Shown here in pieces: positions 2,134 through 46,330 of a stretch of DNA of 64,000 nt. This DNA is from Schmidtea polychroa (taxonomy: Eukaryota), in the NCBI GenBank assembly GCA_044892525.1, contig CM097886.1, forward strand, positions 183,136,312 to 183,200,311, given 5' to 3'. A model generated the notes under the pieces. It made no database searches, was not told the DNA's origin, and worked only from the letters and a program-made list of their open reading frames with translations. The position numbers and the translations under genes are program-made. Numbering within the stretch: the first letter of the stretch is position 1; the number at the start of each line of letters is the position of its first letter.

Positions 2134-5100
2134 TTAATTGAAAAACATTTTAGTCCTGGTGACGATGCCAGCCTTACAGAAGGGGCATTCAAATAACTCC
2201 ATGGAGCAAACATTACATGTCAAATGGCCACATTGGAATACAATTTCCACATTATTACCTGAGCAAATTTGGCACATCTAAATTGCAATAAATCAATACA
2301 AATTCATCATATAATCTTACTGGTATTTCCTTATCATGTTCATTTCCTTCATTATCAGGTCTGGCAGTGTTTCTGTGACATTTCTCGATCTCCTCCTTAG
2401 CAACAATGTCTGTGCACGCATCAATTATCCGCTGGCCACGTGACGTCCTCTTATAAATGTCACCGCCCAATGAAATTATCATTTTAATAGCTGAGATTAA
2501 TTTCCTTTTAGAATTTGCCTAGAAATCGATCAATGCGATAAATCAATAATCAATCAATACATTATTGGCAATCGATATTTTCTCCAATAATTGTGTCAGT
2601 GCACATTTGCCGCTTTCATCCTCACCATCGAATTCCTTTGATTCAGTGATCAATGCGTTCACCAGTTCCATTTCTCCCATTTCAATTGCAATTTGGAGAG
2701 GAATTTGATTCCTTATGTTTCGCAACATGACAAATTTCCCTTGATTTACCGAATCCAATAATTTCCATGCAAATTCCATCTTCCTTTCTTGCAATATAAA
2801 TGTGAATAAATTTTCACCGTTTCCAAATGTTCTCGGTGCCGATATTTCCGTTTGTATCAAATGGTCAAATAGCTCGATATCATCACTATATACAGCTTTG
2901 TAAAGGAGATTCTCTATAACCGACTGCTGCAATATGGAACTAGATTTATTGAATAGTAATCTTATTAGGTTAGCTCCACAAATCTCGCATGATTGGAAGG
3001 TATCCTTAGATATAGCTGACCGCAAAAAATTGTCAGGCAAAAGCTCAATCAATGCTTTTGCATATGAGAACCACTGATTTAGGAAAGCCGTTTGAAAATC
3101 ATTTGAAGTGAAATTTGTCAATCTCGGCTGATTGGACACGAGTGCAAGCATTAATCTGATAAATTGATTTATTAATATATTTCAATAAATTCTACTTTTC
3201 ACTTCCAATATTCGATGCCAATTGGAAAACAGTGATCCCATTGGTTGATTTGACATTGGCATCTGCTCCGTGTGCAATCAATATATTTGTGATATCGATT
3301 AATTTATTCAAGTTCTAAAATTGATATTTACAAGCCAATCAAAATATATCATTACATCATCATTGATATCAATTGGTGGCTCGACAAGCATCTCAAACAA
3401 TGGAGTGCTTCTCAAATTGTTAACACTGTCAACCTGTGCTCCAGCATTGAGTAGTGAACTGCACATATTTGGTTTCAGGCATTTCACCGCGAGATGCAGC
3501 AGTGAATTGTTGTCACCATCATGAGCATTCGAACTACTTAAATCGAGTCGTTCGAGAAAACACGGAAAAAGAATTCCATGAAATTTCATTGACAATGTTA
3601 ACGCGTTTTCATAGCAAGTCAAAGAAATTATTGATTGTGCAAATGGAATAACTGAAAATAATGAAATTCATTAATATTAATTGAATCATGTGTCTTTTAT
3701 GGCTCATTACACATCCCATTCATTTACTGCTTTAAAAAAATTGTTAAATTTAAGTTATGCAAAGTGATTTGATCAGTTATTATTAATTTATAATAATAAT
3801 TAAATATAAAAAAATGGGAAAATATTTTTAATTCCAGAATTTAAATTTAAACAAAATAAGTATAACATTAAGAAATGAAAATATTATTTACATTATAAAA
3901 AATCCAATAAATACACGAAAGTAAAAATCTTAAACATTGTGAAACATTGCAAATTCATTCAATTTTTTAAATAGGTCAACTTAAAAATTTATAGATTTTT
4001 CGATTTTCAAGGTTTTAACGAAAGTTCAATATTAATATTGATTACTTTGATTCTCCCGGTAATTTTATGGAATCGACACCAGCGTAATCTGAAACACAGC
4101 TTATGACATTTTATATTTTTGAATGGCAACTAGTGTTTCCAAATTACAATTCTATATTAAATGCGTTTATTCATTGCAACGCTAAAAATCAACACACAGG
4201 TAAGTTTTTATGTTTATATAATATACACGTATTTTTTTTATTTTTACATTATGGATGAGTTTATTCAATGCATCGGGTTTTGTGACAATTTTCTGTGATT
4301 TTCTGTGTATAAAGTTTGTGATTGAATTGAATATTTATGCGCGTTCATTTGATTAATTTATTGTGGGTAATGATTCCAATGGCTGTCTGTCCACAATTAT
4401 ATTTATTAAACCCGATATTATTCTAGCTTTTGTTTTACTATATTGAAATTTAGAATTAAACTTTTTGTAACAATTAATTTATCAAAAATTAAAATTTTAT
4501 TTTTCAGTTTTTGCTATATTTTTACATTTTTATTGGTTAATAAGAATTTGCAATTTTAATTTCAAGCTTTTACAGCAATTCCTGATAAATCTCTTTTTAA
4601 TACTTTTTCAAAATTTAAACTTCTTTGAATAAGCTAAATTATATTTAATTGTTTTATTGAACAATCATGAGTTATTTTCTGGTTTCCTTATAATGATTTG
4701 TGTCTTCCTGGAAATGGTCTCATAGAAATCTGGATTCAACCAGATAAAGATTTTTTCAAGCTGCCATCATAATTATTGTAAGCTTTTTCAATTTGTTTTT
4801 CATTTGTTATTATTGTTATAAATTATTGAATATATGTTTAGGAATTGTGATGGAAGCCTTTATGATACGCTCGTGTATGTGTACTATTTATTGCATGGAT
4901 ACATCTATTTGACCTACTTTTTTAATAACTTTAAATATACATTCCAGCAGAAGACACAAGCCGTTATGATGATGCGAGTCTATGACCTAGATAATATTTG
5001 AGTTAACCTACATAATATATAAGGCCAAAACAGCCTGTCATGATGGAAGCATATCTACTACTTATAGCAGCCTTTATTCATTGGCAACAGGTGTAATCAT

Positions 5101-8100
5101 TGCAGATCCTGATCCTGAACCAATTAAAATATGGATCGCGTCTGTGTGCGCGTTGATTATTTGTTGGGATTGCTTGGTGAGTGCGCATACAGACACGAGG
5201 CAATGTTTGTGTGTTGGTGCTGACTATTTATTATTTGTGGGTTCTGGAAGGACATTATTATTGGTTGTTTGGATGAACTAATTGGATCGCTTTTGAATAT
5301 TGATATTTTGTTTGGTTCATAAAACTTGCTAATGGTTAGGGCTAATAAATCAGGAATGTGCAAAGGTGGATTTGCCGGAGGTGATGCTTCATGAGCTGTG
5401 GTGCTCTCAATTGCTGGGCGCATTCTAGACATGGAGGTTTGACAGATTATTTGATGGCAATACGAACAGGACGATATTACAGGTTTATAACCACAGCGCA
5501 AAGGAGAATTTGTTCGAGATATTAAAGAACAAATGTGTTTCATTGCTCTTGTTGTTGAGCAAGCAATGCAGGCTACTGCTTTATCATCGCTTCCTGATGA
5601 GTTATGAAATACCAGATGATCAATTTATAACCATTGGAAATGAAATATTGAGATGTCCAGAAGCTTTGTTACATCCATCGTTCTTGTGAATGGATATTGT
5701 TGGTATTCAGGAGGCAACTTATGACAGCATTACATTTTCTGCAGGACTAATAAGATATGATTTGATCCTTCCGTAATGCTTCTAGATCAGGGGTGCCCAC
5801 TAATTTTTCTAGGAGCTACATTCACATCCAAAATGTGTATGCGATCTACTTTTTTAATACTTACATAATATTTACCTAAAATGCAATAAATTCATCACAA
5901 TAAAACAAATATATGTCAAAAGATGGAAAATTAAAGTATATAACTATTTATTATAAAAAAATGTAATATAGGAAATCAAATTTAATGAAAATTATTTTTA
6001 TATAGAACTTTTCGATGTTGATGCTCTACATTGGGTTGAATCCACTAGATTTTTGTAGTTTGGGATATAAGTGCTGATTTGATCCTTCCGTAATGCTTCT
6101 AGATGTTCCCGTGGCATTGTAACCAATGACAACAAATCAAACATTTCATTTGGCACTCAAAATAATTATTTCACAGAAATTATTTCTATTTTCTTTAACA
6201 AATTAATTAAAAGTTTTAGTTTGATAAAGTTTCACATCAATACAAGTATTAATATCGAAATAATAAAAGCAGATCGATTGCATATTAATTTAAATTAAAT
6301 CAATTAATTAATTAATCAATTAAATAATAAATAATTTACCATTTTCATTTCCGGAATATCGATTAATATTCTGTAAATAATAGAAATATAAAATTCAAAT
6401 CAAATAAATTGTGACATTTCCTCACCTCAACAGATCTCATAACATCGGCACCCCGGTTCACCAGTTGAGCACAAACATTTATCATCCCTCGAATAACTGC
6501 ACAGTGTAGGCCAGTCAACCCCATCTATATCTCACATAATTATTCAATCAATAATCAACAAATCTCACAAATCCAGCATGATCAATATCAATTGATCGAT
6601 CTATCAAATATTCACAATTGTCCTCCAATCCACTCGCAATCGCCTCATGCAATGGAGTTTGAAAATACTAAATAATGCCAATATATCAATATCAATATTG
6701 AATACTCTATTGAATTACTTTGTTTTGTGTATTGGTATCGATCTCAAATTGCTGCAATACATTGGTGCATTTCCTATGATGCAGCGAATGGGCCAAGGCC
6801 AACGCAGTCCCCATTGTCTACAAATATATTGATTTGATCATTTCAATAAACACATACTTCATTATTTGCATTGATATCTACAATGTCCTGATTATCTAGT
6901 ATAAATTTGGTCATATCGGCATCATTATCAGATATTGCTGTGTGTAATATGGTGAAATTGACCTTGATAATAAATAAAATTAATTATTGATTTTGCATTA
7001 TTCTGATGCACCTTTTGTCGTGATTCCATCAGAATCATTCGTTCTTGTATTTCTTCTTGTATTTCCACGAATCCTTTTTCCTTTGCTTTGTCAATGGCCT
7101 TGATCCATAACTGAATGATGAAATCAATGCTGATTTAATCAATTTCATCTCAAATTAGTTAATAATAATAATAATAATAACAATAATAACAATAATAACA
7201 TAAAACAGGTAAATGATAAGGTAAGCATTTGCTGCAAAATCTTTATTAAGTGAGAAAATTATTTATATAAAATAATTCAATTCGATCTTTCATAATTTTG
7301 CTTCAATGTTGAAATGCTTGCATGATTTCTTTTTAAAATTCATTTCTGATTTTTATTTGTTGAAAATTGATTAATTAAAATTACTGAAATGTAAAGCATA
7401 AAATATTTACGTGTTGACATATTTGAAAATATGTCCTACCAGTCAACTCAGGAAATTATTCACTATAAAATAGCGCTTAAAAGATTTCAAATATCTCAAC
7501 TGGTTCCACTGTAACTGATGTAAGCGCTTAGGAACACTAATCCCCTAGCCATGGGATATATTAGTCGCTATCATATTATTAATATATTATTATCATATCA
7601 GACTATTATCATATTATTAATTTTGATCCCAGAAGTTATTTGTCGGAAACATTTTTAAAAACCTGTTTGTATGTATCCAATAGTAACAAATTATTACTAT
7701 TATTATTATTAGAACTTATTTTAAAAATTTTACCACAGATTTCCATTGACATTATATTTATTTAAAAGCTTGACTATGAATCAGTAAATATATCGATATA
7801 ATTGATATTCACGAATTTTCGACACCGCCTTTTTCAATTGAATTATTATTATTAATATGATTTGACATAATGAAATAACAAAATTCAAAAATGTATTTTA
7901 TCACAATTTTTAATTATTTAAACAAAATTAATATTTTGGTAAATGGTTTTGTGTGATTAATGCTTTTCTAATCACAACAATTCACTCCTCCTAATTTGAT
8001 TGCTCTGCTGGCTATAGACGATCAACTGATAAATTCTCTAATACATAGCTTGAAATATTTTGGCTGCTTTTCTAATAGACGAAACGGACCATTATATGGA

Positions 8101-11100
8101 GCTTCTAATGATTTCCATACATCTTTTCTCATGTACACGAATTCACAATCCTTAATATATTTATTGATCGTCATACAATCTTGCAATGGTCTTTCGATTA
8201 TTCTGAAGCTCTCAATAATTTCTTTAAATTGATATGGAGAAGCTTCTATTTATGAATTAAAAATAATTCCTGGTACAGCAAGATCACATTCAAATGCTTT
8301 TTGTGTCGGAAAATAACCTGCTGAATCCCGACTGTTCCTTATCGTTAACAGTACCTGAGGTAAAACGTCAAACTTTTAATTTACTTTTATTCATTTTATT
8401 AATTTATTATTAATTTTATCCATTGAAGACATTTCTTGAGATTTTAGTGTCTGATGGAATTCTGCAACTTTAAAATTGGCTTGGGAATGATAAGCGCATG
8501 TTTGATTTGTATTTATTCCAAGAAAGTTGAACATATACTGGAATAAAGAGTTTGTAAATTGATCTGTTACAATTTCAGATGGGATTTCATATCGGGAAAT
8601 CCCCACTTCAATTAGTGATTTTGCCACAGTTTCTGAATCTATATATTTAATGGCCAATACCTCAGGGTAATATGTTTGTCTATCGATCATTGGTAGTAGA
8701 TAGGACTTCTCGTTATTTGCTAGGAAGATTTGCAATTCTGCTTTGATATGACGATATACTTTTGATTTTAAGCAGGAATCGCGTTGCTGACACAACATCT
8801 GGACATCCTTTGTCATCTTGTGTCATGTATATGAACTCAACATCAATATCTTGGCCATTCGTATTTCTGGATGAGCGACATATTTGGGTATATAGACAGT
8901 ACTGTGCGAATTAGTGTGAATATGAAATAATTTACATGTTTTATCATCTAGTTATACGACCATGTCAAAATTAGCTCCAGTTTAGTTTTACTGTTCTTAT
9001 ATTTGTTGTGTAATAACGTATTGGAGTTTACAGACGTGTTGTTATAGATAATTTAGTAAATACTATTGTGCTTCCTTTAATTTTTTACTAAGACTATCCA
9101 AACTATTCTAATCTTTGTTTCTTTCTTATTTTAAAAGATGAATGTTTCTCCCAAGAAGAGCACAAAAATTGTTACCTTAAGTGAACACATCAATGTATCA
9201 AAGAGATATTGCAAAGGAGTGTGGTGCGAGTTTAGGAGCTGTAATCAACATTTTAAAACAAAAGAAGGAAGTTGAGACGGTTTAGGCGAATAGAAAAGGA
9301 AAATGTGGAAGGAAGAGGAAGACAATAATAGATGAATTTATAATAGGAGTAAGTAAATTGAATTCTAGAGAAAATAACCAGCAACTTCAGAAAGGCTTAG
9401 CACATGGTGGAGTTATTATTCCCGATTCCACAGCTTGAAAATGGCTTATCAAAGTTAGAACAAGTCTAATAGACCTCAAAAAACAATTATTGAGCTTTGT
9501 TTAAAAAAGTGACAACGAAAACTTTACGACAGCTCATATCAATAGAATCATTAAACGCGATAAGGACGATGTTTTGATCTGGTTATTGTATAAAGGTACC
9601 GGATCCCTTGTGTCGGTTGAAGGCATGATAAAGGCGCTTTGTTTAATTTCTAGAAATATCTTAGCTGTTTTTAAAGATTATAATTTAAAACGGCATTATT
9701 TTCAAAAATATGTTTCCATGTATGATGATTACGACGGAATGTATCGTAAAGATAAAGTAGCTGGACTTAAGGAAAATCTGTTTTCTCAACAAACATTTTT
9801 CAAGAGAATTGTCACTCAAAATTATTCTGTCGTAAAAGTCAGTTATGTGGTAACAAATATAATTGCAAAGAAGTCGAAACCCTTCACAGATCGCAAATTT
9901 ATTAAGTAATGTTTGGAAAGTCTAGCTGACATTATTTGTCCAGATAAAAAATCAGACATATCAAAAATCAGTTTATCGCAACTAACTATAGGAAGACGAA
10001 TTGAAGATATTCAGGACACCTTTGTCCATTGTGAGGCGTTTTGTAATTTGTATTTAAATAATGGTATGATGTTGTGCTTGTTTGATTGTATGCTGAAATC
10101 CTTACTTATACATTGATTATTATTTTTTAGAAACTCCTCAAACAAATTAACGTTATAATTTGTTTTAATAATATTTGTGTTTTTATAATAAACGTGTTTT
10201 AGTTATGGATTCTATTAATACCCGTAGCTCTGTGGCTAATATGGCGACCACGATTGCAAATTTTATCAAGCCACCAGAAACATATGACATGGATTCAGAC
10301 GCATAAATCAGTGGCTGCATTCGGTGACGAGGATCCAGAGGCTGATTTTGAGTACCCAAATGGGAATGCTCCACCACACGAGGAGGTGATCGGAGCAATA
10401 AATTAAAGGTAATTAATGATATGAGTAAGGGTTGTATGATTTTGAATGATTGTGATAGGTTGAATGATTGTGATAGTTTGAATGATAACTGTTGTGATGG
10501 TGTTTTTGATTATAGAAATTATATTAATATATACATTAATAAATTTTGTATGGATGAAGTTTTTAAAGACCCACCCCTAACTTCTAATGAACTAAATGTT
10601 CTTAATCGTGATAAACGGAATGATATAATAGTATACGATAAAATGCAGGGAAGGCCCAGTGTTACCGTAATGATTAATAATATAAAATTAGTATGCCTAT
10701 TAGATACTGGAGCTAAAATAAGTGTGATTGATTATAATATTTTTAAAAAACTTGGAAATTTGAATATGACTACAAGTAATCTGAAAATAAGATGTGCGAA
10801 TGATAGCCCGATTGAAATTTGCGGTAAAACTTTATTAAATGTAAAAGTTGATAAAATTTCTGATATTAAAAAAGTAGAATTCGTTGTAGCCAAAGATATA
10901 AACCCAAAGTTAATAGGAGGTATAGATTTTCTCGAAAGAAACCGTACAGACGAAATAAATACAATTATGGAAAATTCATTTAATAACCACATAAGTGAAG
11001 ATAAGATTATAAATAATTTAATTTCCACGTTTGACGGTATTTTTATGAAACATAAATGGGATGTTGGAAAACCCGAACTATTAAAGCATGAAATACTTAC

Positions 11101-14100
11101 TAAAGGTAGTCCGATTGTAATAAACCCAAGACGACAACCTATACATTTAATAGAAAAAATTGAAGAAAATATTCAAGAAATGTTGAAATATGGCATTATA
11201 TCAGAATGTACATCTCCTTGGAATTCTCCATTAGTATGTGTTAAAAAGAAAAACAGTAGTGATATAAGAATATGCTTGGACTACCGTGCTTTAAATAATA
11301 TAACCGAAAGACCGATTTTTCCCATTCCAAATACTGATGAATTATTAGAAATTCTTGACGGAGCAAAGTTTTTCTCGACAATTGATTTAGGCAATGCTTA
11401 TTATCAAGTAGAACTCGATGATGCATCAAAATTGAAAACAGCATTTTCGACAAAAAGCAAGCAATATTACTTTAACAGAATGCCATTTGGAATAGCAGCC
11501 GCACCAGCAACATTTCAAAGACTTCTCGTTTCCGCCAATGGAACATTAGTAAAAAGACTACACACATCAAACGAATCCATCATTTCATCATCAGAACTTT
11601 TCTTCAGTGCAGCAATGAATGAAGCAAATTCAAAGCTATCCTTACATTCGAACTCAGACGCCATTAAAGGTTTTAATAACCCATCCAAAAATTTGGCAAT
11701 TTTATATTGAGCGGTTCCTACCATCGATAACACTGGTCTCATAGGCATACCTGCTTTATGTACTTTTGGAAGACCATAAAACTGGTTTATATACAACGCC
11801 TGATAGTTTTTGTGAGTTTAAATATAAAAGGAATATGGTGAGAGGATTAGTGTTTCGTGCTTGGTCACTATCCTCCACGTTTGCTAATTCAGTAAAAAGT
11901 ATTGATGTATTAGTTGAGTTGTTACTTAAAAATGGCTACTCTAAATCTTCTCTTGAGAAGATGACAAAAGTGACCGTGGATAAGTTAATGTTTAAATCTG
12001 ATAACGTTGGTATGCGTACGTCTGAATCTGAGGTACCTATTGATCCTGAGGAAAGTACTAAGTTAAATTCGGAAAGTGACAAGAATCGATCCAATCGCAT
12101 GGAGCAGAAATATGTGTTAGTATTGCCTTATTCGGAGGGTTTCAGAGAATTTAAACATAAAATTCTCAAATATGTAGACAAGGATCAATTCAGGATTGTT
12201 TCCACTTCTTGCAAAGTTAGCAGTATGTTTACTAGTAAATGTCCAACGCCAATTGGTTTGTGTTCTGAGCTTGTGTATCAATTTTCATGTAATGGGTGTA
12301 ATGCCATATACATTGGAGAGACTGCCCGTCATCTCTGCACCCGAGTTCTTGAACACTGTCGACCAAAAGGATTGACTAATATTAGTAATCATGTTAGGAA
12401 ATGTGTCAGTAAAAAAATAGGTATCTCTGATTTTAAAATTATTTCAAAAGGTTTAAGTAATTATTGGGAACGAGTAACTTGTGAGGCATTGTTGATTAGA
12501 TATTTAAATCCAAAAATAAATGATCTAGTTGCCCGTTCCACGGAGATTTTGAATGTGTTTAAGTAATTGAAGGATGAAGGTTTGGAGTCGTGTTTGTGGT
12601 ATAATTATGTTTGTGTTTTGTAAATTATGTAATTTTTTTTAAATTTGTTAACTTTATGTTGAATGTTAAATGTTATTAAATTAAAATTTAATTTTAAAAT
12701 AATATGTATGTGGGGCTATGTAAAATATGGTTTGGTTTTTTAAAATATTGTTTTTGAAATATTTTTTTTTAAATTTTTGATACAGTTTGGAGATGATTAT
12801 TATTAGTTAATTTGTTTAGATATTGCATATTTTATGTCTTATTATTGATTATCCAGATTGCGGCCTGACGAAGATTGTTGTACAATTGAAATATATCGCG
12901 TTTATGTTGAATTTATTGAGTTGGCATTTCTGTATTATTAAATCATTGCCACGTTTTTTTGATTATTAATAATAATAATAATATTAATTATTATTATTAT
13001 AACAATCACTAAATGATGGCATCGATTTAAATATAAATAAAACGACAATCCAATATTAATAACTTTTTTTTAAAATTAAGAAATAATGAAATAACAAGTG
13101 ATTATAAAGTAAAATTATTTATTGGTATATTTTGGATAGAAAAATAGAAATCGTTAATGAATTGCATAATTATATCTTTCTTGAATGTTGCTTTTTAAAT
13201 TGCGTCTTTCAGAAGCTAGAGATATTCGTTTGAATGAGAATGCAAATGCCTTTATTGCTCTATTGATGCTAAATGTGCTAATGTTCATTGGAATTATTTC
13301 ATAAACTTGCGTTCGAATTGACTCTGATGTTATTGAAACATCCTCAAGAAAAAACCTCACGCAAATTCTTTTTCAGGCGTTAACAGTTTTCCTTCGTGGC
13401 TTTTCGTTGATTCAATCCTTCCACCTTTTTGTATACACGGATAACACTCGCAACTGTTTGGTAATTTATATTTAATTAGTTTGAAATTTCTTTTATGCTT
13501 TAGCTGGGATATATTTATCGTAAACAAATAGCTCATCGAATCTGACAGCTTCATACTTACAGAGATTTACATTCACCCTTAATATTTTGATTTTGACATC
13601 ATTATTGAAAAAAGAGAAATAATAATAATAATAATAATAATTTTAAATCAATAAATAATAATAAATTAATAAAATAACTTGTCAATATATTATATAATTC
13701 AGATAAATCAATAATTATTCCATTTCCACAAAGTTTATGAAATATTTCAACATAAAATCGATCGCCTTCACTCAAATGCGAAATTTAAAAAATTTAACAA
13801 ATCGATCTGACGCTTCATAAAATATTTATTTAAAATTCATAAATAAACAAATCAGATATTTTCTCACCGATTTGTCGTAAACCGTTTTCTTCATGATCGA
13901 TTCGACAAACAGATGATGGCCTTGATTGACAGCCAATTCCAGAAACGACAACTCGCCCTAATCAATATCAATACAAATACAAATAATTATTTGACCTTAC
14001 GATTCTGCGCTGCCCATTGATAGTGTGAGCAGAATTGAATCTCTTGAACCCGCTCATGTGCCCGTGAGTGATGCAGCGATAAAGGACGCACTGAAATTAT

Positions 14101-17100
14101 TTATTTATTGATTTATTCAAATAATCAGCTCACTTCTTTCATTAAATTTGCATTTTTGTCCATTTGTGCTGTCAATAATTCCATTGCATTATTGATTTCC
14201 TATTGATGAGAATATTAATTATATCAATCAATAAATCAATCAAACTTTATCATCAATTGGTTTGTCAAGGATTAATTTAATAATCTTATCAGCATTGGAC
14301 TTGATTGCTCCCTCCAGCACAGCCAATCCAGTCTAAATATCAATTATTAACCAATCAGAATATCACAAATTTACATAAATATTCTGCATTATGAAATCAG
14401 AAGATTTGAACAAATCACCAAATGCGATTGCATCATCCCGTTCAATGGCAGCAAATAACTGAAATATTTATTCAAATTGATTCATAATGAAATAATTCAC
14501 ACTTTCTCCGCATGAGTCAATAATTCCACGCAATCAGCACATTTATATTGCTTTGCTATATCCAGCGGACTCTTTCCATCCTAAATAAATAATCCAATCA
14601 AAATATCCGAATCAGCGAATCATTTAAACATCCCCATTCACAAACAGATCATTAAAGCCCTGTGGCAATAAATGGTACTAAAACCGACACTGCAAAACCG
14701 CGTGCAAAGTGTAAATACCCGTGAGATATCATGCTAAAGAAATAGTTGAGAAATGGCAAATCTGATCCGAATTACTAGCCAATGGAATTGCCGATTTGCA
14801 TTTATTAATGAATTCTGTCAGTGGAGATCTCCAAATAAATGAAGTCGACATTTCAATATTGCTTCATTCATTTCAGACATTTACTGCATAAAATCCTCCA
14901 GTGCAAGGAATAAATTGCCAGAAAAGCTGCTAGAAAAGCTTTTCATTCATTTTGAGGCGTTGCAGAAAATATTTCAAATAGCAAAAATTATTTCTGTTGA
15001 GAAGTGAAAAAGTGAATTAAAAATAAAATCGATAGCAAGGAAATAGCCAATTAAAATGCTGAATTTAATGTGAGAAGTAGAGAAATGCAAATTTACAGGA
15101 AATATTTTACATACCAAAACGTAAACAATATTTGTGATGAACATCTGGCCTGCACAATCAATATTCAGTGGCCATTGTTCTGCTTGCATTGCAATTATTG
15201 GCCTGATCTGTTTCACGGTAATTTTGATACAAATGCTATGTAAATATATAATTATTATTTTTAGCTTTGTTTTTATCATTATCATTAAATTATTTGTGAA
15301 ATGTCCGAAATATTGGCAAATACAAATGAGAAACCCGATGAGTATTCTGGCAATGAAAGCGATGAACATTATGACAGTGAATATATCATACAATAGTGAC
15401 AGCGACACTCCTGACAATGAAGGAGCTTCTTCGTCCTCAGAAAGCGAGAGTGAATATGAGAAATTTACAAAATAAAGGTGCGAATGTTACAGTTGATGAG
15501 CAACTATTTCCAACCAAGCTCGATGCTTTATAAATCATGACTTTGTTCTCACAATTTAGAAAGGTAAACCGAACTAAAGTTATTTTTAAACATAAATTCT
15601 CTTTCATTTTATAATAATATATCTGACCGAATGGCAAGGAAATGTAGCGTCAAATCTGGGCCTAGAATATGGCCGCTTCAAGTACCTTTCAATATGCTAG
15701 GCTTAGCTGCAATGAATGCCTCGATACCATATAAGAGAACCGCAGCAGATAACATATCAATATGCTAGGCATAGCTGCAATGAATGCCTCGATACCATAT
15801 AAGGGAACAGCAGCAGATAACATATCAATATGCTAGGCCTAGCTGCAATGAATGCCTCGATACCATATAAGGGAACTGCAGCAGATAACATATCAATATG
15901 CTAGGCCTAGCTGCAATGAATGCCTCGATACCATATAAGGGAACAGCAGCAGATAACATATCAATATGCTAGGCCTAGCTGCAATGAATGCCTCGATACC
16001 ATATAAGGGAACAGCAGCAGATAACATATCAATATGCTAGGCCTAGCTGCAATGAATGTCTCGATACCATACAAGGGAACTGCAGCAGATAACATATCAA
16101 TATGCTAGGCCTAGCTGCAATGAATGCCTCGATACCATACAAGGGAACTGCAGCAGATAACATATCAATATGCTAGGCATAGCTGCAATGAATGCCTCGA
16201 TACCATACAAGGGAACTGCAGCAGATAACATATCAATATGCTAGGCATAGCTGCAATGAATGCCTCGATACCATATAAGGGAATAGCAGCAGATAACATA
16301 TCAATATGCTAGGCCTAGCTGCAATGAATGCCTCGATACCATATAAGGGAACAGCAGCAGATAACATATCAATATGCTAGGCATAGCAGCAATGAATGCC
16401 TCGATACCATATAAGGGAACAGCAGCAGATAACATATCAATATGCTAGGCTTAGCTGCAATGAATGCCTCGATACCATATAAGGGAACTGCAGCAGATAA
16501 CATATCAATATGCTAGGCCTAGCTGCAATGAATGCCTCGATACCATATAAGGGAACTGCAGCAGATAACATATGCTGCTCAATACAAAATCAGAAAGCGT
16601 GTTACCAGTAAATATATCGACACCTTCAAATAGCCTCCATCTCACGCGTAAATGGCGTATGATTGGATATTGCAATAATAATAACATCACAAATAATTAT
16701 TTTCATTGCTTTTAATGAATTATTTCCAGTTTAATAATGAATATTATATTATAATTATATTTATTTATTATTTGATAATATGGCAGCGCATGTAAGGCTA
16801 CTTTATAAAGGTTATTTGCTAATCAATCGCTTCTGCTTGGGGAGCAAGATATTATATTTGATGGCCCATTGAAGCCATTATGACTGTTGCTGGTAGCAAT
16901 TGCTATGATTGTTATTGGCCGTTCTAGTGTTAGTTATCTAAATTGATAAATTATTGGCTGTTGGCAATGCAATTTGCTGCGGCGGCTGGTAAAGGGCAAG
17001 ATCACATGATAATGCTGTCACATCGATATTGGCCATATCGGGCCTGCAGGGAGCTATTGCATTCTCACCCCGCTAACGGTTCCATTGACACCTCATTCTG

Positions 17101-17690
17101 TGCTCTCTTGCCTCTCACTAGAGCTCTCTGAGGCAGTTCTCAATGGCATTTCATTCATTGCTCCTTATGCAATCCATTTCACATATTCAATTAACCAGAT
17201 CGCAACTCACCAGATTTAATTGATATTTCATTATATAAAATGTTAATGTTTACTTTTGTTCGGCAATCGATTCGGCATTTCCGCTGCAGCAATAATTTCA
17301 ATATTTCTGAATGCCCATGGCAGCTAGCATAATGAATCGCTCTCCATCCCTGCAATTTATCAATTGATTATTTATTTGCAATGATTATTTACCCATTTGT
17401 CCTCAGATTCCACATCGCAGTTGCGGTCAAGCAATAACCTGGCAATATCAACAAATCCATAACGGCAAGCAAAGTGAATGGGCAACCGGCCCTGAAATCA
17501 GAAACATTAACCCAATAATTCACATTGCCAATCAATCTCACATAATCATCAACAATCCTATGCACAAATTCTCCCCTCAAATTATCCCTGACGCCCTCCA
17601 CATTTCCCCTCATCAAGTGCTCCTTGAAACATTGAAAATCCCTGCAATGCAAATTATCCAATGCAAATCATAATCAATATTTCACCCCAT
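2134..17690 (-). CDS. Ankyrin-repeat + C-terminal RING-finger protein (probable E3 ubiquitin ligase), copy A, 21 exons, ~892 aa
   Basis: Hand-spliced exons: 17686-17690, 17542-17641, 17393-17491, 17254-17349, 14503-14580, 14375-14458, 14246-14332, 14134-14199, 14001-14090, 13868-13957, 7012-7110, 6858-6962, 6719-6817, 6569-6667, 6426-6524, 6340-6370, 3356-3651, 3196-3314, 2561-3155, 2321-2518, 2134-2277. All introns GT-AG, phases compatible, total 2679 nt with no internal stop. Ankyrin motifs include [58 protein letters not shown] and [15 protein letters not shown]. Last exon: [37 protein letters not shown]. The start ATG is tentative (further 5' exons possible). Confidence 0.88.
5325..6140 (+). 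pseudogene. Actin pseudogene with large internal deletion, inside intron 16 and antisense to the host gene (copy A)
   Basis: Reads [23 protein letters not shown], then directly [38 protein letters not shown], then [43 protein letters not shown]. These match canonical actin segments; stops and frameshifts present; interrupted by hAT sequence at 5788. Confidence 0.9.
5788..6075 (-). mobile_element. 288-bp single-end remnant of the Buster-like hAT that is full length in copy B
   Basis: Starts caggggtgcccactaattt and matches B from 35481 to ~35770; flanked by a 30-bp direct repeat (5758-5787 / 6075-6104). Confidence 0.9.
7990..8880 (-). mobile_element. Gypsy LTR-retrotransposon integrase remnant (copy A)
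   Basis: ORF 8391-8816 has rve-like [40 protein letters not shown]; the downstream minus frame reads [26 protein letters not shown] (GPY/F motif). Confidence 0.8.
8897..9625 (+). mobile_element. Tc1-like transposon remnant (copy A)
   Basis: Terminal cagtactgtgc at 8897; decayed N-terminus [51 protein letters not shown]; DDE-domain fragment [12 protein letters not shown]. Confidence 0.7.
9626..10030 (+). mobile_element. hAT (GTF2IRD2/Buster-like) transposase N-terminal fragment (copy A)
   Basis: [19 protein letters not shown]..., [15 protein letters not shown] and [18 protein letters not shown] motifs. Confidence 0.8.
10241..11522 (+). mobile_element. Gypsy gag(deleted)-protease-RT fragment (copy A)
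   Basis: Protease LLDTGA; RT motifs [50 protein letters not shown]. Most of gag is deleted relative to B; truncated by the Penelope-like insert. Confidence 0.92.
11523..12910 (+). mobile_element. Penelope-like retroelement with inverted 5' RT fragment (copy A)
   Basis: Minus strand 11523-~11780: [28 protein letters not shown] (PLE RT). Plus strand ~11780-12566: RT thumb plus GIY-YIG nuclease [28 protein letters not shown]. Confidence 0.9.
12861..12910 (+). ncRNA. Hammerhead-ribozyme-like motif in the PLE 3' region (copy A)
   Basis: CTGACGA (12865-12871), stem attgt/acaat, GAAA (12888-12891), stem tata/tatg with a G-U pair, then a GTT triplet. Stem I is weak. Confidence 0.5.
13154..13560 (-). 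mobile_element. IS630/Tc1-like transposase remnant (copy A)
   Basis: [34 protein letters not shown], typical of the HTH-linker region of Tc1/IS630-type transposases; fragmented. Confidence 0.6.
15301..16710 (+). mobile_element. piggyBac (PGBD4-like) transposase remnant with internal deletions (copy A)
   Basis: Acidic N-terminus from 15301; [14 protein letters not shown] at 15477; [30 protein letters not shown] at 15631; Cys-domain relic [12 protein letters not shown] after the array. No TIR/TTAA ends found. Confidence 0.8.
15691..16573 (+). repeat. 68-bp minisatellite, 13 units (copy A)
   Basis: Unit aatatgctaggcctagctgcaatgaatgcctcgataccatataagggaactgcagcagataacatatc; unit starts at 15691+68n up to 16507. 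Confidence 0.97.
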
Positions 17691-30826: not shown

Positions 30827-33800
30827 TTAATTGAAAAACATTTTAGTCCTAGTGACGATGCCAGCCTTACAGAAGGGGCATTCAAATAACTCCATGGAGC
30901 AAACATTACATGTCAAATGGCCGCATTGGAATCCAATTTCCACATTATTATCTGAGCAAATTTGGCACATCTAAATTGCAATAAATCAATACAAATTCAT
31001 CATATAATCTTACTGGTATTTCCTTATCATGTTCATTTCCTTCATTATCAGGTCTGGCAGTGTTTCTGTGACATTTCTCGATCTCCTCCTTAGCAACAAT
31101 GTCTGTGCACGCATCAATTATCCGCTGGCCACGTGACGTCCTCTTATAAATGTCACCGCCCAATGAAATTATCATTTTAATAGCTGAGATTAATTTCCTT
31201 TTTGAATTTGCCTAGAAATCGATCAATGCGATAAATCAATAATCAATCAATACATTATTGGCAATCGATATTTTCTCCAATAATTGTGTCAGCGCACATT
31301 TGCCGCTTTCATCCTCACCATCGAATTCCTTTGATTCAGTGATCAATGCGTTCACCAGTTCCATTTCTCCCATTTCAATTGCAATTTGGAGAGGAATTTG
31401 ATTCCTTATGTTTCGCAACATGACAAATTTCCCTTGATTTACCGAATCCAATAATTTCCATGCAAATTCCATCTTCCTTTCTTGCAATATAAATGTGAAT
31501 AAATTTTCACCGTTTCCAAATGTTCTCGGTGCCGATATTTCCGTTTGTATCAAATGGTCAAATAGCTCGATATCATCACTATATACAGCTTTGTAAAGGA
31601 GATTCTCTATAACCGACTGCTGCAATATGGAACTAGATTTATTGAATAGTAATCTTATTAGGTTAGCTCCACAAATCTCGCATGATTGGAAGGTATCCTT
31701 TGATATAGCTGACCGCAAAAAATTGTCAGGCAAAAGCTCAATCAATGCTTTTGCATATGAGAACCACTGATTTAGGAAAGCCGTTTGAAAATCATTTGAA
31801 GTGAAATTTGTCAATCTCGGCTGATTGGACACGAGTGCAAGCATTAATCTGATAAATTGATTTATTATCAATGATTTATTAATATATTTCAATAAATTCT
31901 ACTTTTCACTTCCAATATTCGATGCCAATTGGAATACAGTGATCCCATTGGTTGATTTGACATTGGCATCTGCTCCGTGTGCAATCAATATATTTGTGAT
32001 ATCGATTAATTTATTCAAGTTCTAAAATTGATATTTACAAGCCAATCAAAATATATCATTACATCATCATTGATATCAATTGGTGGCTCGACAAGCATCT
32101 CAAACAATGGAGTGCTTCTCAAATTGTTAACACTGTCAACCTGTGCTCCAGCATTGAGTAGTGAACTGCACATTTTTGGTTTCAGGCATTTCACCGCGAG
32201 ATGCAGCAGTGAATTGTTGTCACCATCATGAGCATTCGAACTACTTAAATCGAGTCGTTCGAGAAAACACGGAAAAAGAATTCCATGAAATTTCATTGAC
32301 AATGTTAACGCGTTTTCATAGCAAGTCAAAGAAATTATTGATTGTGCAAATGGAATAACTGAAAATAATGAAATTCATTAATATTAATTGAATCATGTGT
32401 CTTTTATGGCTCATTACACATCCCATTCATTTACTGCTTTAAAAAAATTGTTAAATTTAAGTTATGCAAAGTGATTTGATCAGTTATTATTAATTTATAA
32501 TAATAATTAAATAAAAAAATAATGGGAAAATATTTTTAATTCCAGAATTTAAATTTAAACAAAATAAGTAAGAAATGAAAATATTATTTACATTATAAAA
32601 AATCCAATAAATACACGAAAGTAAAAATCTTAAACATTGTGAAACATTGCAAATTCATTCAATTTTTTAAATAGGTCAACTTAAAAATTTATAGATTTTT
32701 CGATTTTCAAGGTTTTAACGAAAGTTCAATATTAATATTGATTACTTTGATTCTCCCGGTAATTTTATGGAATCGACACCAGCGTAATCTGAAACACAGC
32801 TTATGACATTTTATATTTTTGAATGGCAACTAGTGTTTCCAAATTACCCAAATTACAATTCTATATTAAATGCGTTTATTCATTGCAACGCAAAAAATCA
32901 ACACACAGGTAAGTTTTTATGTTTATATAATATACACGTATTTTTTTTATTTTTACATTATGGATGAGTTTATTCAATGCATCGGGTTTTGTGACAATTT
33001 TCTGTGATTTTCTGTGTATAAAGTTTGTGATTGAATTGAATATTTATGCGCGTTCATTTGATTAATTTATTGTGGGTAATGATTCCAATGGCTGTCTGTC
33101 CACAATTATATTTATTAAACCCGATATTATTCTAGCTTTTGTTTTACTATATTGAAATTTAGAATTAAACTTTTTGTAACAATTAATTTATCAAAAATTA
33201 AAATTTTATTTTTCAGTTTTTGTTATATTTTTACATTTTTATTGGTTAATAAGAATTTGCAATTTTAATTTCAAGCTTTTACAGCAATTCCTGATAAATC
33301 TCTTTTTAATACTTTTTCAAAATTTAAACTTCTTTGAATAAGCTAAATTATATTTAATTGTTTTATTAAACAATCATGAGTTATTTTCTGGTTTCCTTAT
33401 AATGATTTGCGGCTTCCTGGAAATGGTCTCATAGAAATCTGGATTCAACCAGATAAAGATTTTTTCAAACTGCCATCATAATTATTGTAAGCTTTTTCAA
33501 TTTGTTTTTCATTTGTTATTATTGTTATAAATTATTGAATATATGTTTAGGAATTGTGATGTAAGCCTTTATGATACGCTCGTCTATGTGTACTAGTGTT
33601 ATTGCATGTATACATATATTTGACCTACTTTTTTAATAACTTTAAATATACATTTCAGCAGAAGACACAAGCCGTTATGATGATGCGAGTCTGACCTAAA
33701 TAATATTTGAGTTGACCTACATAATATATAAGGCCAAAACAGCCTCAGCAGGTCGATCAGTGGTGCTGTCATGATGGAAGCATATCTACTACTTATAGCA

Positions 33801-36800
33801 GCCTTTATTCATTGGCAACAGGTGTAATCATTGTAGATCCTGATCCTGAACCAATTAAAATATGGATCGCGTCTGTGTGCGCGTTGATTACACCTAACCG
33901 CGAAAGTTAACATTGTCTATAATATAAGTTGGTGTGCACACCACCTGAGGTGAGTCACCAATTATATGACAATGTTAACTTAATTTCATTTATTCAATTT
34001 TCCAAAAATCGTTTAAAGGTAAGTTTTTGCATTGAAGTAATTTTTAGGACTTGATTTTGATTTTATATAATTATGAGATCATTATTCAAGTTCTTAAATA
34101 TTACTGTTAGTCAGCATTTATAATATTGATAATATATAACATTGATAATTAAATTTCAGGTGTTTTTTTAGGAATTTTATCGTATTTTATTTGGATTTAT
34201 TTGGATTTATTTCGTAAAAATGTAAGTTAGATATTTTTATAATTATAAATATGTAAAGTAATCACTAAACATTTATTTTTTAAAGACATTTAGTAAAGAA
34301 TGGATAAAATATTTTTTAAGTTTTTGTAATCTTCTTTCGAATTTTGTCTATTTCTGTAATTCTATGATTTAATTTATTAAAATTTACGATTTGCGATGTT
34401 TTTCCTGCAAATTCAAAGATGTCGAAGGATCTTCTTCAATATCTGTAAATCTAAAGAAATTTTATATTCTAAATTATTTTATAATTAAATCTTACGATGT
34501 ATTTACTTCTTTTTCCCTAAAGCTCAACGTAGAGCAGTCGGAATCTGATTCAAAAGTTTTTTTGTACATAATTTTTTAAATAATTTTAAAATATTGATAT
34601 GTTAATTATATGTTAATCAATCTGAATTTCGCATGAAAAACACTTTACTTAATTTTGTATGTATTTTTCATTATGTGTGCTGTGTTTGTATGCTTAATTA
34701 TTTTCTCTCACTTTTTAGATTCCTATAATAAATATGTTAAATTTCGCGGCATTAAATTTCTACACACAGGTAAGTTTGTGTGTTCCTATAATATATATTT
34801 ATTGATTTTTTTTTTAGATTATAGATAATGTTATATTTCGCGGTTAGGTGTATTTGTTGGGATTGCTTGTTGAGTGCGCACACAGACACGAGGCAATGTT
34901 TGTGTGTTGGTGCTGGCTATTTATTATTTGTGGGTTCTGGAAGGACATTATTATTGGTTGTTTGGATGAACTAATTGGATCGCTTTTGAATATTGATATT
35001 TTGTTTGGTTCATAAAACTTGCTAATGGTTAGGGCTAATAAATCAGGAATGTGCAAAGGTGGATTTGCCGGAGGTGATGCTTCATGAGCTGTGGTGCTCT
35101 CAATTGCTGGGCGCATTCTAGACATGGAGGTTTGACAGATTATTTGATGGCAATACGAACAGGACGATATTACAGGTTTATAACCACAGCGCAAAGGAGA
35201 ATTTGTTCGAGATATTAAAGAACAAATGTGTTTCATTGCTCTTGTTGTTGAGCAAGCAATGCAGGCTGCTGCTTTATCATCGCTTCCTGATGAGTTATGA
35301 ACTACCAGATGATCAATTTATAACCATTGGAAATGAAATATTGAGATGTCCAGAAGCTTTGTTACATCCATCGTTCTTGTGAATGGATATTGTTGGTATT
35401 CAGGAGGCAACTTATGACAGCATTACATTTTCTGCAGGACTAAAAAGATATGATTTGATCCTTCCGTAATGCTTCTAGATCAGGGGTGCCCACTAATTTT
35501 TCTAGGAGAGCTACATTCACATCCAAAATGTGTATGCGATCTACTTTTTTAATACTTACATAATATTTACCTACAATGCAATAAATTCATCACAATAAAA
35601 CAAATATATGTCAAAATATGGAAAATTAAAGTATATAACTATTTATTATAAAAAAATGTAACTTAGGAAATCAAATTTAATGAAAATTATTTTTATATAG
35701 AACTTTTCGATGTTGATGCTCTACATTGGGTTGAATCCACTAGATTTTTGTAGTTTGGGATATAAGTGCTAAGACAACTTCTTAGGCTGGATTCCAAATG
35801 GTCATCTGTTAATGTTGCTCGGTACTTTGACTTTATAATTTTCAGATTGTGAAAAAGCAGAATCACATAAATAAGTTGAACCAAAACATGATACTAAATT
35901 TTCGAAGCATTTTTTCAAGTTTGAATATTTATCCTCTGATAGATATTTCCATACATTTGCTTCGGAAGATCTTGATTTAATGAAGATATCATTTTGAAGT
36001 GTGATTATTTCCATTTCAAGTATAGGGATATCCATTTTAAACAAAGTTGAAATTGAATCTGCAACAATTTCTGGTTTTATTTTTGGATTAAACGGAAAGG
36101 ACATAAATGCAGCCACAATTTCAAGTTTCTTGGAGTCTTGAAAACGTCTCTCGAACTCTAAAACCAAAATTTTGATCTGTTTCGCATATCTCGTAATATT
36201 AAAGTTGACATTTTCAGATTCTTTTAATTGTGACAACATATTTGGAAAATAACTTAAATTTTTGTCTTCTATTTTGGTAATAAGTAAATGAAGCTTCTGT
36301 ATAAATGCATTGATTGAACTTATCATATCGAATATCAATTTATCCTTACCTTGTAAATCGAGATTTAATTCATTCAGAATTGCAGTAATATCTACTAAAA
36401 ATGCCAAATCCAAGAGCCAAACATCATCTTCCAATTGCTTGAACTCATCACCTCTTGCGGCAAGGAACAACTTAATCTCAGAAAGCAAATCTCTAAATCT
36501 TTGTAAGAATTTTCCTCTACTTAGCCATCTTACATCTGAAGGCATCAGTAATTCAGTAGGACCTTCGCTATTACTTTCTTCAATTTGTAATTTGAAAAGT
36601 CGTCTCTGAAGACTTCTTGCACGAATCGAGTTAGCAATTTTGAATGTTATTTCCATAATATCTCTCATATTCAGAATTTTAGCACACAAGGCTTGTTGAT
36701 GAATAATACAGTGGTAGGAAAGAAAATCTGGGAATTCACAATCATTCCTACAATATGCTATAAATCCGTTGTGACGCCCTGTCATAGCTGGTGCGCCATC

Positions 36801-39800
36801 TGTTGTTATCGATACAAGCTTACAAATTTGGAGCTGAATGCTGTTGGCATAAGCTTTAAAATTCTGAAATATATCCTCACCTCGAGTTTTACTTTTGAGT
36901 GGTATAATTGTTAATAATTCTTCCTTCGTAGAAAAATCTTTAAAGACCATTCGAATAAAAATTATAAGCTGCGAAATATCAGCCGCATCAGTTGATTCGT
37001 CTGCTTGCAATGAAAATGCGGTACAATTTCCTATGTCTAACATTAACTGATTTTTTAAATTGGAACTTATTTCTTGGACTCTCCGTGTAACTGTATTACG
37101 GGACAATTGCATATCAGTAATAGCAGAAATTATATCTGATTTATTTTTAAAATCACAAAATAATGATTCTGCCGCTTCTAAAAATGCTTCTTTTACAATT
37201 ACTCCATCACTAAAAGATTTCTTATTTTTTGCCAGAATGTAGCTTACCGGAAAGATGCAGCTGTAGCTGACTTTGATTTGGATGTTAACTTCGTAAAAAA
37301 TGACTGTTGAAAAGAAATGCATGTTTTCAGTTCCATGATTTTAGACTTGCGTAGTTCACTGTCAAGTGGATAATCAACTGCAAAAGTCTTATGAATTGTC
37401 TTGAAATGCCTTTCCAAATTCCCTCTTTTTGGTAATGAAATAGTAGCTTTACAAATTAAGCAACAACATTTACCTTTAATCATTACAAAAAAGTACTCCT
37501 TCTCCATTTCTTCGCTATAATGATAAGTCTTGGCTTTTTAATTTAGCATTTTTAAACAAAATTAATTTAACAAAAAAGCTTAAGAAAATTTTTCACTTTG
37601 TTACACCAACCAAAATTAAATTTAACTAAATAAACAAAATTAAATTAAACTAAATTAAACTAAATAACATTTTGGAAATAGTGAAATCAAAATTAAAAAA
37701 TGTTATTTAGTATTACCATAGAAATGGAACACAGAACATGAAAATTGGCAAAAAATTTAAGCATAAAATAGAAATTTTATATAAAATCTAAATTTATATA
37801 AAAAATATTTTTATGAAGATCTACTAAAAAATCCTTCGCGATCTACCGGTAGATCGCGATCGACCTTATGGGCACCCCTGTTCTAGATGTTCCCGTGGCA
37901 TTGTAACCAATGACCAAATAATAACCAAATCAAACATTTCATTTGGCACTCAAAATAATTATTTCACAGAAATTATTTCTATTTTCTTTAACAAATTAAT
38001 TAAAAGTTTTAGTTTGATAAAGTTTCACATCAATACAAGTATTAATATCGAAATAATAAAAGCAGATCGATTGCATATTAATTTAAATTAAATCAATTAA
38101 TTAATTAATCAATTAACTAATAAATAATTTACCATTTTCATTTCCGGAATATCGATTAATATTCTGTAAATAATAGAAATATAAAATTCAAATCAAATAA
38201 ATTGTGACATTTCCTCACCTCAACAGATCTCACAACATCGGCACCCCGGTTCACCAGTTGAGCACAAACATTTACCATCCCTCGAATAACTGCACAGTGT
38301 AGGCCAGTCAACCCCATCTATATCTCACATAATTATTCAATCAATAAACAACAAATCTCACAAATCCAGCATGATCAATATCAATTGATCGATCTATCAA
38401 ATATTCACAATTGTCCTCCAATCCACTCGCAATCGCCTCATGCAATGGAGTTTGTGAATACTAAATAATGCCAATATATCAATATCAATATTGAATACTC
38501 TATTGAATTACTTTGTTTTGTGTATTGGTATCGATCTCAAATTGCTGCAATACATTGATGCATTTCCTATGATGCAGCGAATGGGCCAAGGCCAATGCAG
38601 TCCCCATTGTCTACAAATATATTGATTTGATCATTTCAATAAACACATACTTCATTATTTGCATTGATATCTACAATGTCCTGATTATCTAGTATAAATT
38701 TGGTCATATCGGCATCATTATCAGATATTGCTGTGTGTAATATGGTGAAATTGACCTTGATAATAAATAAAATTAATTATTGATTTTGCATTATTCTGAT
38801 GCACCTTTTGTCGTGATTCCATCAGAATCATTCGTTCTTGTATTTCTTCTTGTATTTCCACGAATCCTTTTTCCTTTGCTTTGTCAATGGCCTTGATCCA
38901 TAACTGAATGATGAAATCAATGCTGATTTAATCAATTTCATCTCAAATTAGTTAATAATAATAATAATAATAATAACAATAATAACAAAAAACAGGTAAA
39001 TGATAAGGTAAGCATTTGCTGCAAAATCTTTATTAAGTGAGAAAATTATTTATATAAAATAATTCAATTCGATCTTTCATAATTTTGCTTCAATGTTGAA
39101 ATGCTTGCATGATTTCCTTTTAAAATTCATTTCTGATTTTTATTTGTTCAAAAATTGATTAATTAAAATTACTGAAATGTAAAGCATAAAATATTTACGT
39201 GTTGACATATTTGAAAATATGTCCTACCAGTCAACTCAGGAAATTATTCACTATAAAATAGCGCTTAAAAGATTTCAAATATCTCAACTGGTTCTACTGT
39301 AACTGATGTAAGCGCTTAGGAACACTAATCCCCTAGCCATGGGATATATTAGTCGCTATCATATTATTAATATATTATTATCATATCAGACTATTATCAT
39401 ATTATTAATTTTGATCCCAGAAATTATTTGTCGGAAACATTTTTAAAAACCTGTTTGTATGTATCCAATAGTAACAAATTATTACTATTATTATTATAAG
39501 AACTTATTTTAAAAATTTTACCACAGATTTCCATTGACATTATATTTATTTAAAAGCTTGACTATGAATCAGTAAATATATCGATATAATTGATATGCAC
39601 GAATTTTCGACACCGCCTTTTTCAATTGAATTATTATTATTAATATGATTTGACATAATGAAATAACAAAATTCATAAATGTATTTTATCACAATTTTTA
39701 ATTATTTAAACAAATTTAATATTTTGGTAAATGGTTTTGTGTGATTAATGCTTTTCTAATCACAACAATTCACTCCTCCTAATTTGATTGCTCTGCTGGC

Positions 39801-46285: not shown

Positions 46286-46330
<45 letters not shown>

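Follow-up and report, generated by a model that had tools for sequence, protein, structure and literature searches.

Tandem ankyrin-RING genes in the window

The window analysed here is a stretch of 64,000 nucleotides (nt) from the planarian Schmidtea polychroa (NCBI GenBank assembly GCA_044892525.1, contig CM097886.1, positions 183,136,312 to 183,200,311 of the forward strand). According to self-comparison, this 64-kb window consists of two tandem units, A (about 120-29369) and B (about 29258-64000). Each unit carries one unannotated gene on the minus strand with 21 exons and 892 codons, encoding ankyrin repeats and a C-terminal RING domain. An original prediction, made from the letters only, had proposed that the first exons of this gene pair diversify under selection. 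The window is best explained as two members of a young tandem array, belonging to a flatworm-lineage family of putative RING-type ligases with an ankyrin-stack body.

The gene model was assembled from minus-strand open frames, tblastn of the paralog protein P0003 and inspection of splice sites; P0003 aligns to copy A exon by exon. All introns have GT/AG borders and most are 40-55 nt long. Every exon of A (21/21) has a B counterpart of equal length, and in both copies the frames are open and the splice sites retained. The parts of the gene pair that bear on the following analysis are:

2134..17690, minus strand: copy A gene, with N-terminal cap, ankyrin repeats, helical segments, further ankyrin repeats and C-terminal RING
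30827..52297, minus strand: copy B gene, with the 21 exons of A and two additional chimeric ankyrin exons
17393..17491, minus strand: A exon 3, one 33-residue ankyrin repeat (Pfam Ank 30.8 bits); differences from B R37W, R58S and DKW>SNG
17254..17349, minus strand: A exon 4, ankyrin repeat (Pfam Ank 29.8 bits); differences from B Y75S and CH>SN (positions 10, 13, 14)
14503..14580, minus strand: A exon 5, partial ankyrin repeat (Pfam Ank 17.0 bits, below cutoff); differences from B D101G, I108Y, KC>NR and E125A
14375..14458, minus strand: A exon 6, helical segment without Pfam match; differences from B A129P and F143L
14246..14332, minus strand: A exon 7, helical segment without Pfam match; differences from B T155P and K165E
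14134..14199, minus strand: A exon 8, 22 codons, where silent A/B differences first appear (2 silent, 2 replacement)
2134..2277, minus strand: A exon 21, C3HC4 RING at the extreme C-terminus (Pfam zf-C3HC4_3)
46935..47269, minus strand: B exons 5-7, counterparts of A exons 5-7

With the gathering cutoff of Pfam Ank (PF00023) at 21.1 bits, exons 3 and 4 are ankyrin repeats, and additional repeats are found in exons 11-15 and 17-19. Many of the repeats occupy one exon each, 99 nt long and bordered in phase 0. The RING profile zf-C3HC4_3 (PF13920) scores 34.2 bits against a cutoff of 27, in agreement with the RING-HC pattern, and the ligand spacing read from the translation is C-x2-C-x10-C-x-H-x2-C-x2-C-x6-C-x2-C. 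All zinc ligands are retained in B, where both RING replacements are non-ligand residues between the second and third cysteines. The closest solved relatives of this RING are BIRC7, XIAP, RING3 of MIB1 and cIAP, and the alignment reaches almost the last residue. Such a RING presumably works as a ubiquitin-transfer ligase domain.

Replacement differences between the copies

Substitutions between copy A and copy B were counted by the Nei-Gojobori method. Exons 3-7 (444 nt) contain 17 changed codons, none of them silent, with 19.5 replacement differences (Nd) and 0.5 silent differences (Sd). From A to B the changes are R37W, R58S, D66S, K67N, W68G, Y75S, C78S, H79N, D101G, I108Y, K113N, C114R, E125A, A129P, F143L, T155P and K165E, the same list that the original prediction had compiled by eye. 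Its count for exons 17-21 (1352 nt), 3 replacements and at least 6 silent changes, also agrees with the 3 and 6 obtained here. The ratio of replacement to silent divergence (pN/pS) in these last exons is 0.13; the C-terminal part of the gene is under purifying selection.

In exons 3-7, 20 of 444 nt differ (4.5%) and pN is 5.6%. Compared with the region's own silent sites, pN/pS is 10.5 (Fisher P 0.0076). Introns were aligned with the 68-nt satellite of intron 4 excluded; 15 of 1913 sites differ in introns 3-6 (0.78%) and 121 of about 11,960 in all 20 introns (1.0%). Exons outside 3-7 differ at 22 of about 2,235 nt (0.98%), and silent-site divergence over the whole gene is 2.2%. The pN of exons 3-7 exceeds the divergence of introns 3-6 (Fisher P 1.3e-8), of all introns (P 2.9e-9) and of all silent sites (P 0.005). 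In a simulation that left the choice of contiguous exons free, P is 0.004 at the silent-site rate.

The localisation of the excess can also be seen in the divergence profile in 1-kb bins. Background divergence is about 1% at 1-13 kb, and two peaks of 2.6% and 2.0% lie exactly over exons 5-9 and exons 3-4, respectively. Between both exon clusters, the aligned non-satellite part of intron 4 diverges by about 0.45%, and at 19-29 kb, upstream of the gene, divergence is nearly nil (0-0.1%).

A mutational bias driven by base composition was rejected as the source of the excess. The guanine plus cytosine (GC) content is 42% in exons 3-7, 29.5% in introns and 38% in the other exons, which are nevertheless only 0.98% diverged. 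This gap is far too small, so composition cannot explain an approximately 5-fold excess. The spectrum of changes also matches that of introns, since the transition to transversion ratio is 0.54 in exons 3-7 versus 0.75 in introns with no significant difference.

Positions of the changes in the ankyrin repeats

Mapping was made by consensus position and covers the 91 residues of exons 3-5; exons 6-7, with 4 changes, are helical without a Pfam ankyrin match and cannot be mapped. Pfam sets residue 1 of each exon at position 2 of the Ank profile, the consensus G. On this scale R37W is at position 5, K67N and W68G at 2 and 3, C78S and H79N at 13 and 14, and D101G at 3. The Pfam placement agrees with the original prediction, which had put four motifs (G[R>W]LP, D[KW>KA/NG]G, AS[CH>SN]GH and TK[D>G]GK) on the x positions of the ankyrin consensus.

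Two sets of positions randomised in engineered libraries were used for comparison. For designed ankyrin repeat proteins (DARPins) we take these to be positions 2, 3, 5, 13, 14 and 33, which matches the consensus string on which the original prediction relied. In the ANK-N5C library positions 2, 3, 5, 10, 13 and 33 were randomised, and they lie in the beta-turn and helix 1 and form one continuous binding surface (PMC4308713). The DARPin set, 15 of the 91 sites, contains 6 of the 13 changes (hypergeometric P = 0.0065); the ANK-N5C set, also 15/91 sites, contains 7 of 13 (hypergeometric P = 0.0008); and the union of both, 18/91 sites, contains 8 of 13 (P = 0.0004). Changes in the canonical repeats outside the libraries are at positions 1, 15, 16, 26 and 27. 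Position 10 is changed twice. When ten repeats from the two copies and the paralog P0041 are compared, variability is highest in columns 14, 10, 29, 13, 5 and 3. Within the window, the last codon of exon-3-type repeats (hairpin, position 3) occurs in three states, W, G and A.

By consensus position, the changed sites are concentrated on the predicted interaction surface. The claim that the changes hit binding-surface positions is therefore upheld as an enrichment, 6 to 8 of 13 (P 0.0065 to 0.0004), but not as a rule, because 7 of the 13 canonical-repeat changes fall off the DARPin x positions.

Direction of change and possible loss of constraint

Comparison with P0041 and P0003 shows that A is derived at K113, C114 and K165, and B at A125, P129, L143 and P155. 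Residues 101 and 108 differ in almost every sequence compared. Derived changes in both lineages speak against decay of one copy alone. Pseudogene decay of one copy was rejected on this ground, together with the intact frames and splice sites and the pN/pS of the C-terminal exons.

Several points, here and in the sections on transcription and exchange below, weigh against diversifying selection as the explanation. The exon 3-7 window was chosen post hoc and ends just before the first silent changes: exons 8 (2 silent, 2 replacement) and 10 (2 silent) adjoin it, and for exons 3-10 pN/pS is 1.3 and not significant. Some changes are clustered (DKW>SNG, ATA>TAT, KC>NR and CH>SN), which leaves about 13-14 independent events. 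On that count, the excess over the silent-site rate is no longer significant (P = 0.08-0.12), and that over the intron rate is still about 1e-4, at an event density of about 3%. The two neutral proxies also disagree, the silent-site rate (2.2%) being twice the intron rate (1.0%), and the rate tests rest on a small sample of two sequences. Moreover, a structure prediction of a paralog N-terminus, made without alignment, reached a mean pLDDT (predicted local distance difference test) of only 37, too low for mapping the changes on a surface.

Taken together, the rate points are what would be expected if the N-terminal repeats were simply unconstrained (dN/dS about 1), with the excess arising from the post hoc window, clustered mutations and an intron rate below the true neutral rate. 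Two prolines gained in B, A129P and T155P, are also in its favour. Relaxed constraint, however, cannot lift replacement divergence above the neutral rate, and even the reduced event density of about 3% compares with 1.0% in introns and 0.98% in other exons. The changes are enriched on binder positions instead of being evenly spread, and both lineages changed while their frames stayed open. We therefore consider absence of constraint unlikely, though it is the most probable of the alternatives. As for the diversifying selection of the original prediction, a localised replacement excess over introns was confirmed, but significance for a dN/dS above 1 is lost when exons 3-10 are taken together and, against the silent-site rate, when clusters are collapsed.

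Transcription and variants of the family

Transcription was examined in Logan contigs, taken from two RNA studies of this organism, from an RNA run of a related species and from a further run that is DNA-like. In the three RNA runs the exons have high contig depth, and intron 4 has little or none. The joints between contigs match introns 5, 6, 8 and 9, and loose ends match the junctions 4-5, 7-8, 8-9 and 10-11. Joints and loose ends together support junctions 4-5, 5-6, 6-7, 7-8, 8-9, 9-10 and 10-11, and these matches indicate that exon 8 is real and that the model is transcribed. The gene family and the B-type letters are expressed and do not have the character of a pseudogene. The paralog model P0003 lacks exon 8, although the RNA contigs show it spliced in; this exon is possibly a cassette exon, or else a gain particular to the family.

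Codons 113 and 195 are found in RNA in both the A and the B state, and codons 114, 165 and 192 in the B state only, the DNA-like run included. Contigs also contain variants of exons 5-9 found in neither A nor B, namely D101Y, A124V, A124T, G140D, G162R and V207I, and all six (6/6, among the best-supported variants listed) are replacements. Codon 124 has three states within single runs, so there must be more than two copies. Some contigs are intermediate in haplotype, combining for example K113 with R114. Over exon 5, the contigs of the related species diverge from A at 7 of 61-65 letters, compared with 1-4 of 60-88 letters over exons 6, 7, 9 and 10. At window position 14087 all contigs of four runs have T and both window copies have C (V207I), and P0003 also has I there. 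This mismatch suggests that the samples differ from the reference at both copies or that other copies dominate.

An untranscribed pseudogene copy was one of the outcomes that the original prediction had named as fatal to itself. It was not found insofar as both copies are intact and the family is spliced, but letters private to copy A were not found in RNA: those at 14541, 14175 and 14302 are absent from the contigs of all four runs. Words sampled from A exon 5 were found 0/3 times in RNA runs and 1/3 times in DNA-like runs, weak evidence from three words. The missing letters could reflect strain differences or the dropping of rare variants by the assembler.

The same absence of private copy A letters from four public runs, with at most 1/3 of the sampled A exon 5 words in any listed run, would fit A and B being haplotypes or strain variants of one locus that were assembled in tandem, so that the pattern would be allelic polymorphism. 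A divergence of about 1% is within the range of heterozygosity, and runs of the letter N lie at equivalent sites of both units:

28513-28686: run of 174 N, unit A, about 0.6 kb before the unit end
63104-63317: run of 214 N, unit B, about 0.6 kb before the unit end

However, self-comparison shows unbroken DNA across the A/B junction near 29258-29400. The units also differ in structure: A has 13 satellite copies and 2 repeats against 37 and 4 in B, and introns 10 and 16 are distinguished by insertions of kilobase size. Moreover, the three codon-124 states in contigs of one run require more than two sequences. Even then, the replacement excess would persist and point to balancing selection. Misassembled haplotypes are accordingly regarded as very improbable. 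As to the paired N runs themselves, either one element was masked in both units or the assembly was broken twice by it.

Repeat number and possible exchange between array members

The number of repeats of the exon-3/4 type is not the same in all copies, with 2 in A, 4 in B and 4 in P0041. The relevant region of B is:

51577..52098, minus strand: B exons 3, 3', 3'' and 4, with a 142-nt exon-plus-intron unit present three times

This unit is a 99-nt exon with a 43-nt intron, and its tandem repetition in B adds two identical chimeric repeats in frame. Each chimeric repeat consists of the 5' half of exon 4 and the 3' half of exon 3, with the crossover within the shared TTATTGCT.

Units A and B are collinear, and extra insertions in B raise the A-to-B offset from about 29.1 to 34.6 kb, giving a tandem duplication of 29-35 kb. 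Comparison of 19000-29369 with 53600-64000 gives just 3 differences in the 10 kb upstream of the gene, and the gene body differs by about 1%. A nearly identical upstream part beside a gene body diverged by about 1% indicates that the history of the duplication is mosaic, which opens the possibility of exchange with unseen members of the array.

Such exchange could, in principle, have produced the replacements as well, if short patches carrying older diversity were copied in from other array members or adjacent repeats, through non-allelic gene conversion or templated repair. In addition to the mosaic of blocks differing in divergence, several differences form tight multi-nucleotide clusters, and the contigs with intermediate haplotypes, such as K113 with R114, would be expected. 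For one cluster a short templated patch is possible, since AGCAATGGG occurs at two places in B. On the other side, the introns of about 43 nt between changed exons differ at 0-1 sites, which makes contiguous tracts from a diverged donor unlikely; no silent differences were brought along, and no donor of at least 11 nt exists in the window for any changed patch. Replacement-only diversity would, in any case, still require selection. Imported patches are thus judged rather improbable as the source of the pattern.

In B the 9-mer AGCAATGGG is located at the exon 3 end (hairpin S-N-G) and recurs at positions 13-15 of the repeats that follow (52000-52010 and 51922-51930), and the letters of A differ from it at both those places. 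Either a short templated change between adjacent repeats or coincidence could account for the double occurrence.

Other features of the units

Three long introns (4, 10 and 16) contain transposon fragments, and intron 4 also contains a 68-nt satellite. Its copies are 96-97% identical and lift the local GC content to about 40%; overlapping frames of 44-47 amino acids within it are repeat artefacts. The satellite lies inside the region that the original prediction had delimited, which did not mention it.

15689..16573, no strand: 68-nt satellite in intron 4 of A, 13 copies
48380-50896: B counterpart of the 68-nt satellite, 37 copies
A 7111-13867, B 38904-46556: intron 10, 0.9 kb longer in B
A 3652-6339, B 32359-38132: intron 16, 3.1 kb longer in B
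8394-8822: weak rve integrase match, transposon debris in a long intron
11518-11817: reverse-transcriptase-like frame without Pfam hit, transposon debris in a long intron
19783-20250: reverse transcriptase fragment (RVT_1) in the nearly identical upstream 10 kb
25958-26374: zf-BED open reading frame in the nearly identical upstream 10 kb
26934-27109 and 61525-61700: 62-nt tandem repeat of 2.4-2.8 copies, identically placed in both units

Rfam and tRNA scans of the window gave no match. The possibility that the gene is cargo of a giant long terminal repeat (LTR) retroelement was considered and found unsupported. The gene has 20 introns and shares its orientation with the nearby reverse transcriptase fragment, and self-comparison detected no LTR-like pair of repeats inside the unit.

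Family members and known systems

An exhaustive profile-free search with exon 19 found five proteins at E < 1e-30, followed by generic ankyrin proteins. The protein search with P0003 also found five family members, all of them unnamed, present only in UniParc and without DNA. When the protein search was limited to the N-terminal region, the query itself was the only match. A scan of metagenome loci gave generic ankyrin matches only, an exact look-up of the exon 19 open reading frame gave no match, and a distant metagenomic relative, L003, covers the C-terminal region only. In a protein atlas, P0003 belongs to a 50-member cluster whose known taxa are Platyhelminthes, with neighbours named mib1-like and XBAT33-like. 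No account of a flatworm ankyrin-RING family was found in the literature searched.

MIB1, MIB2 and arthropod mib1-like proteins resemble the gene pair in having ankyrin repeats followed by a C-terminal zf-C3HC4_3 RING, and the planarian RING aligns with RING3 of MIB1. MIB proteins have N-terminal MIB/HERC2 and ZZ domains and two or three RINGs at the C-terminus, whereas Pfam detects in P0041 no MIB/HERC2 or ZZ domains and only one RING, so P0041 is not a MIB protein by domain content; the window exons tested with Pfam also gave no match to MIB/HERC2 or ZZ. MIB proteins recognise substrates through their N-terminal MZM/REP modules and use the ankyrin block mainly as a spacer, whereas in the planarian gene pair the ankyrin end is the variable part. 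The RINGs of inhibitor of apoptosis (IAP) proteins (BIRC7, XIAP and cIAP1/2) are the best solved matches and share the eight zinc ligands and an aromatic residue near the C-terminal end. The C-terminal tail of IAP RINGs works in RING dimers and primes the ubiquitin-charged E2 enzyme (E2~ubiquitin). Unlike IAP proteins, the ankyrin-RING gene has no BIR domains.

Ankyrin repeats serve as the substrate-recognition module of ligases in ASB proteins and in poxvirus and Wolbachia ankyrin-F-box (PRANC) proteins, which recruit a cullin via a SOCS box or F-box. By contrast, Pfam finds no SOCS box or F-box/PRANC in P0041 or the C-terminal exons, and the RING is in the same chain. Plant XB3/XBAT proteins share N-terminal ankyrin repeats and a C-terminal RING and are atlas neighbours, but they are much shorter, and the profile RING_XB3-XBAT31 (PF24921) scores 16.7 bits against a cutoff of 50. 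Comparison with the plant XB3/XBAT proteins gave no sign of common descent.

In several lineages, components of ligases have expanded in tandem, with replacements on the target-binding surface and a conserved ligase-recruiting part. Examples are TRIM5 and TRIM22, fish finTRIM, and the F-box and MATH-BTB families of nematodes and plants. The present case differs from them in its scaffold, an ankyrin solenoid fused to a RING instead of SPRY, FBA or MATH, and in that two copies were compared here instead of a site model applied to a whole family. The proposal of an undescribed system is borne out to the extent that the family is unannotated, but it was overstated, because tandem E3 ligase families that evolve fast and have variable recognition domains are already known.

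With DARPins and ANK-N5C the planarian genes share N-terminal repeats near the consensus, many of the best solved matches of P0041 are DARPin constructs, and the natural differences fall on positions randomised in the libraries. The idea of a DARPin-like repertoire coupled to a RING is acceptable as regards the enriched library positions and the RING profile match. It does not extend to a large repertoire, since engineered libraries are compared here with a handful of germline copies.

Interpretation

Diversifying selection on the N-terminal ankyrin recognition module of a tandem ankyrin-RING ligase, accompanied by change of repeat number through exon units, has in our judgement slightly better than even chances of being correct. 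That selection is the cause, that the N-terminal repeats bind substrates, that the protein is an active ligase and that it might serve in immunity or genetic conflict, as the original prediction had considered possible, are points that we infer from the sequence.

Under diversifying selection the system could work as follows. The C-terminal RING of the IAP/MIB type would recruit a charged E2, and purifying selection would keep the central and C-terminal ankyrin blocks unchanged. The variable recognition end would be formed by the first ankyrin repeats, which have one exon each, with phase-0 borders and introns of about 43 nt between them. After duplication both copies would have fixed replacements in these first repeats faster than neutral sites changed, preferentially at the hairpin tip and on the side of helix 1 that faces the groove. 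The number of repeats would, in addition, change when the 142-nt exon-plus-intron unit is exchanged unequally, as in A with 2 and B with 4.

By analogy with TRIM5 in primates, flatworms might have germline ankyrin-RING arrays that serve as intracellular restriction factors, their hairpin and groove residues being retuned by selection against viruses or the giant retroelements abundant in the genome. We put this forward as a speculation with rather little probability. If it were true, the layout of one exon per repeat with tiny phase-0 introns would allow binding repeats to be duplicated or recombined in frame.

The gene pair is well documented as a candidate but does not amount to a demonstrated system. 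One repeat per exon together with the in-frame 142-nt unit offers a simple and testable route to variation in repeat number. If diversification were confirmed with more copies, the ankyrin solenoid would join SPRY, FBA and MATH among the ligase recognition domains that diversify under selection, and it would provide a case from a phylum whose innate defences are poorly known.

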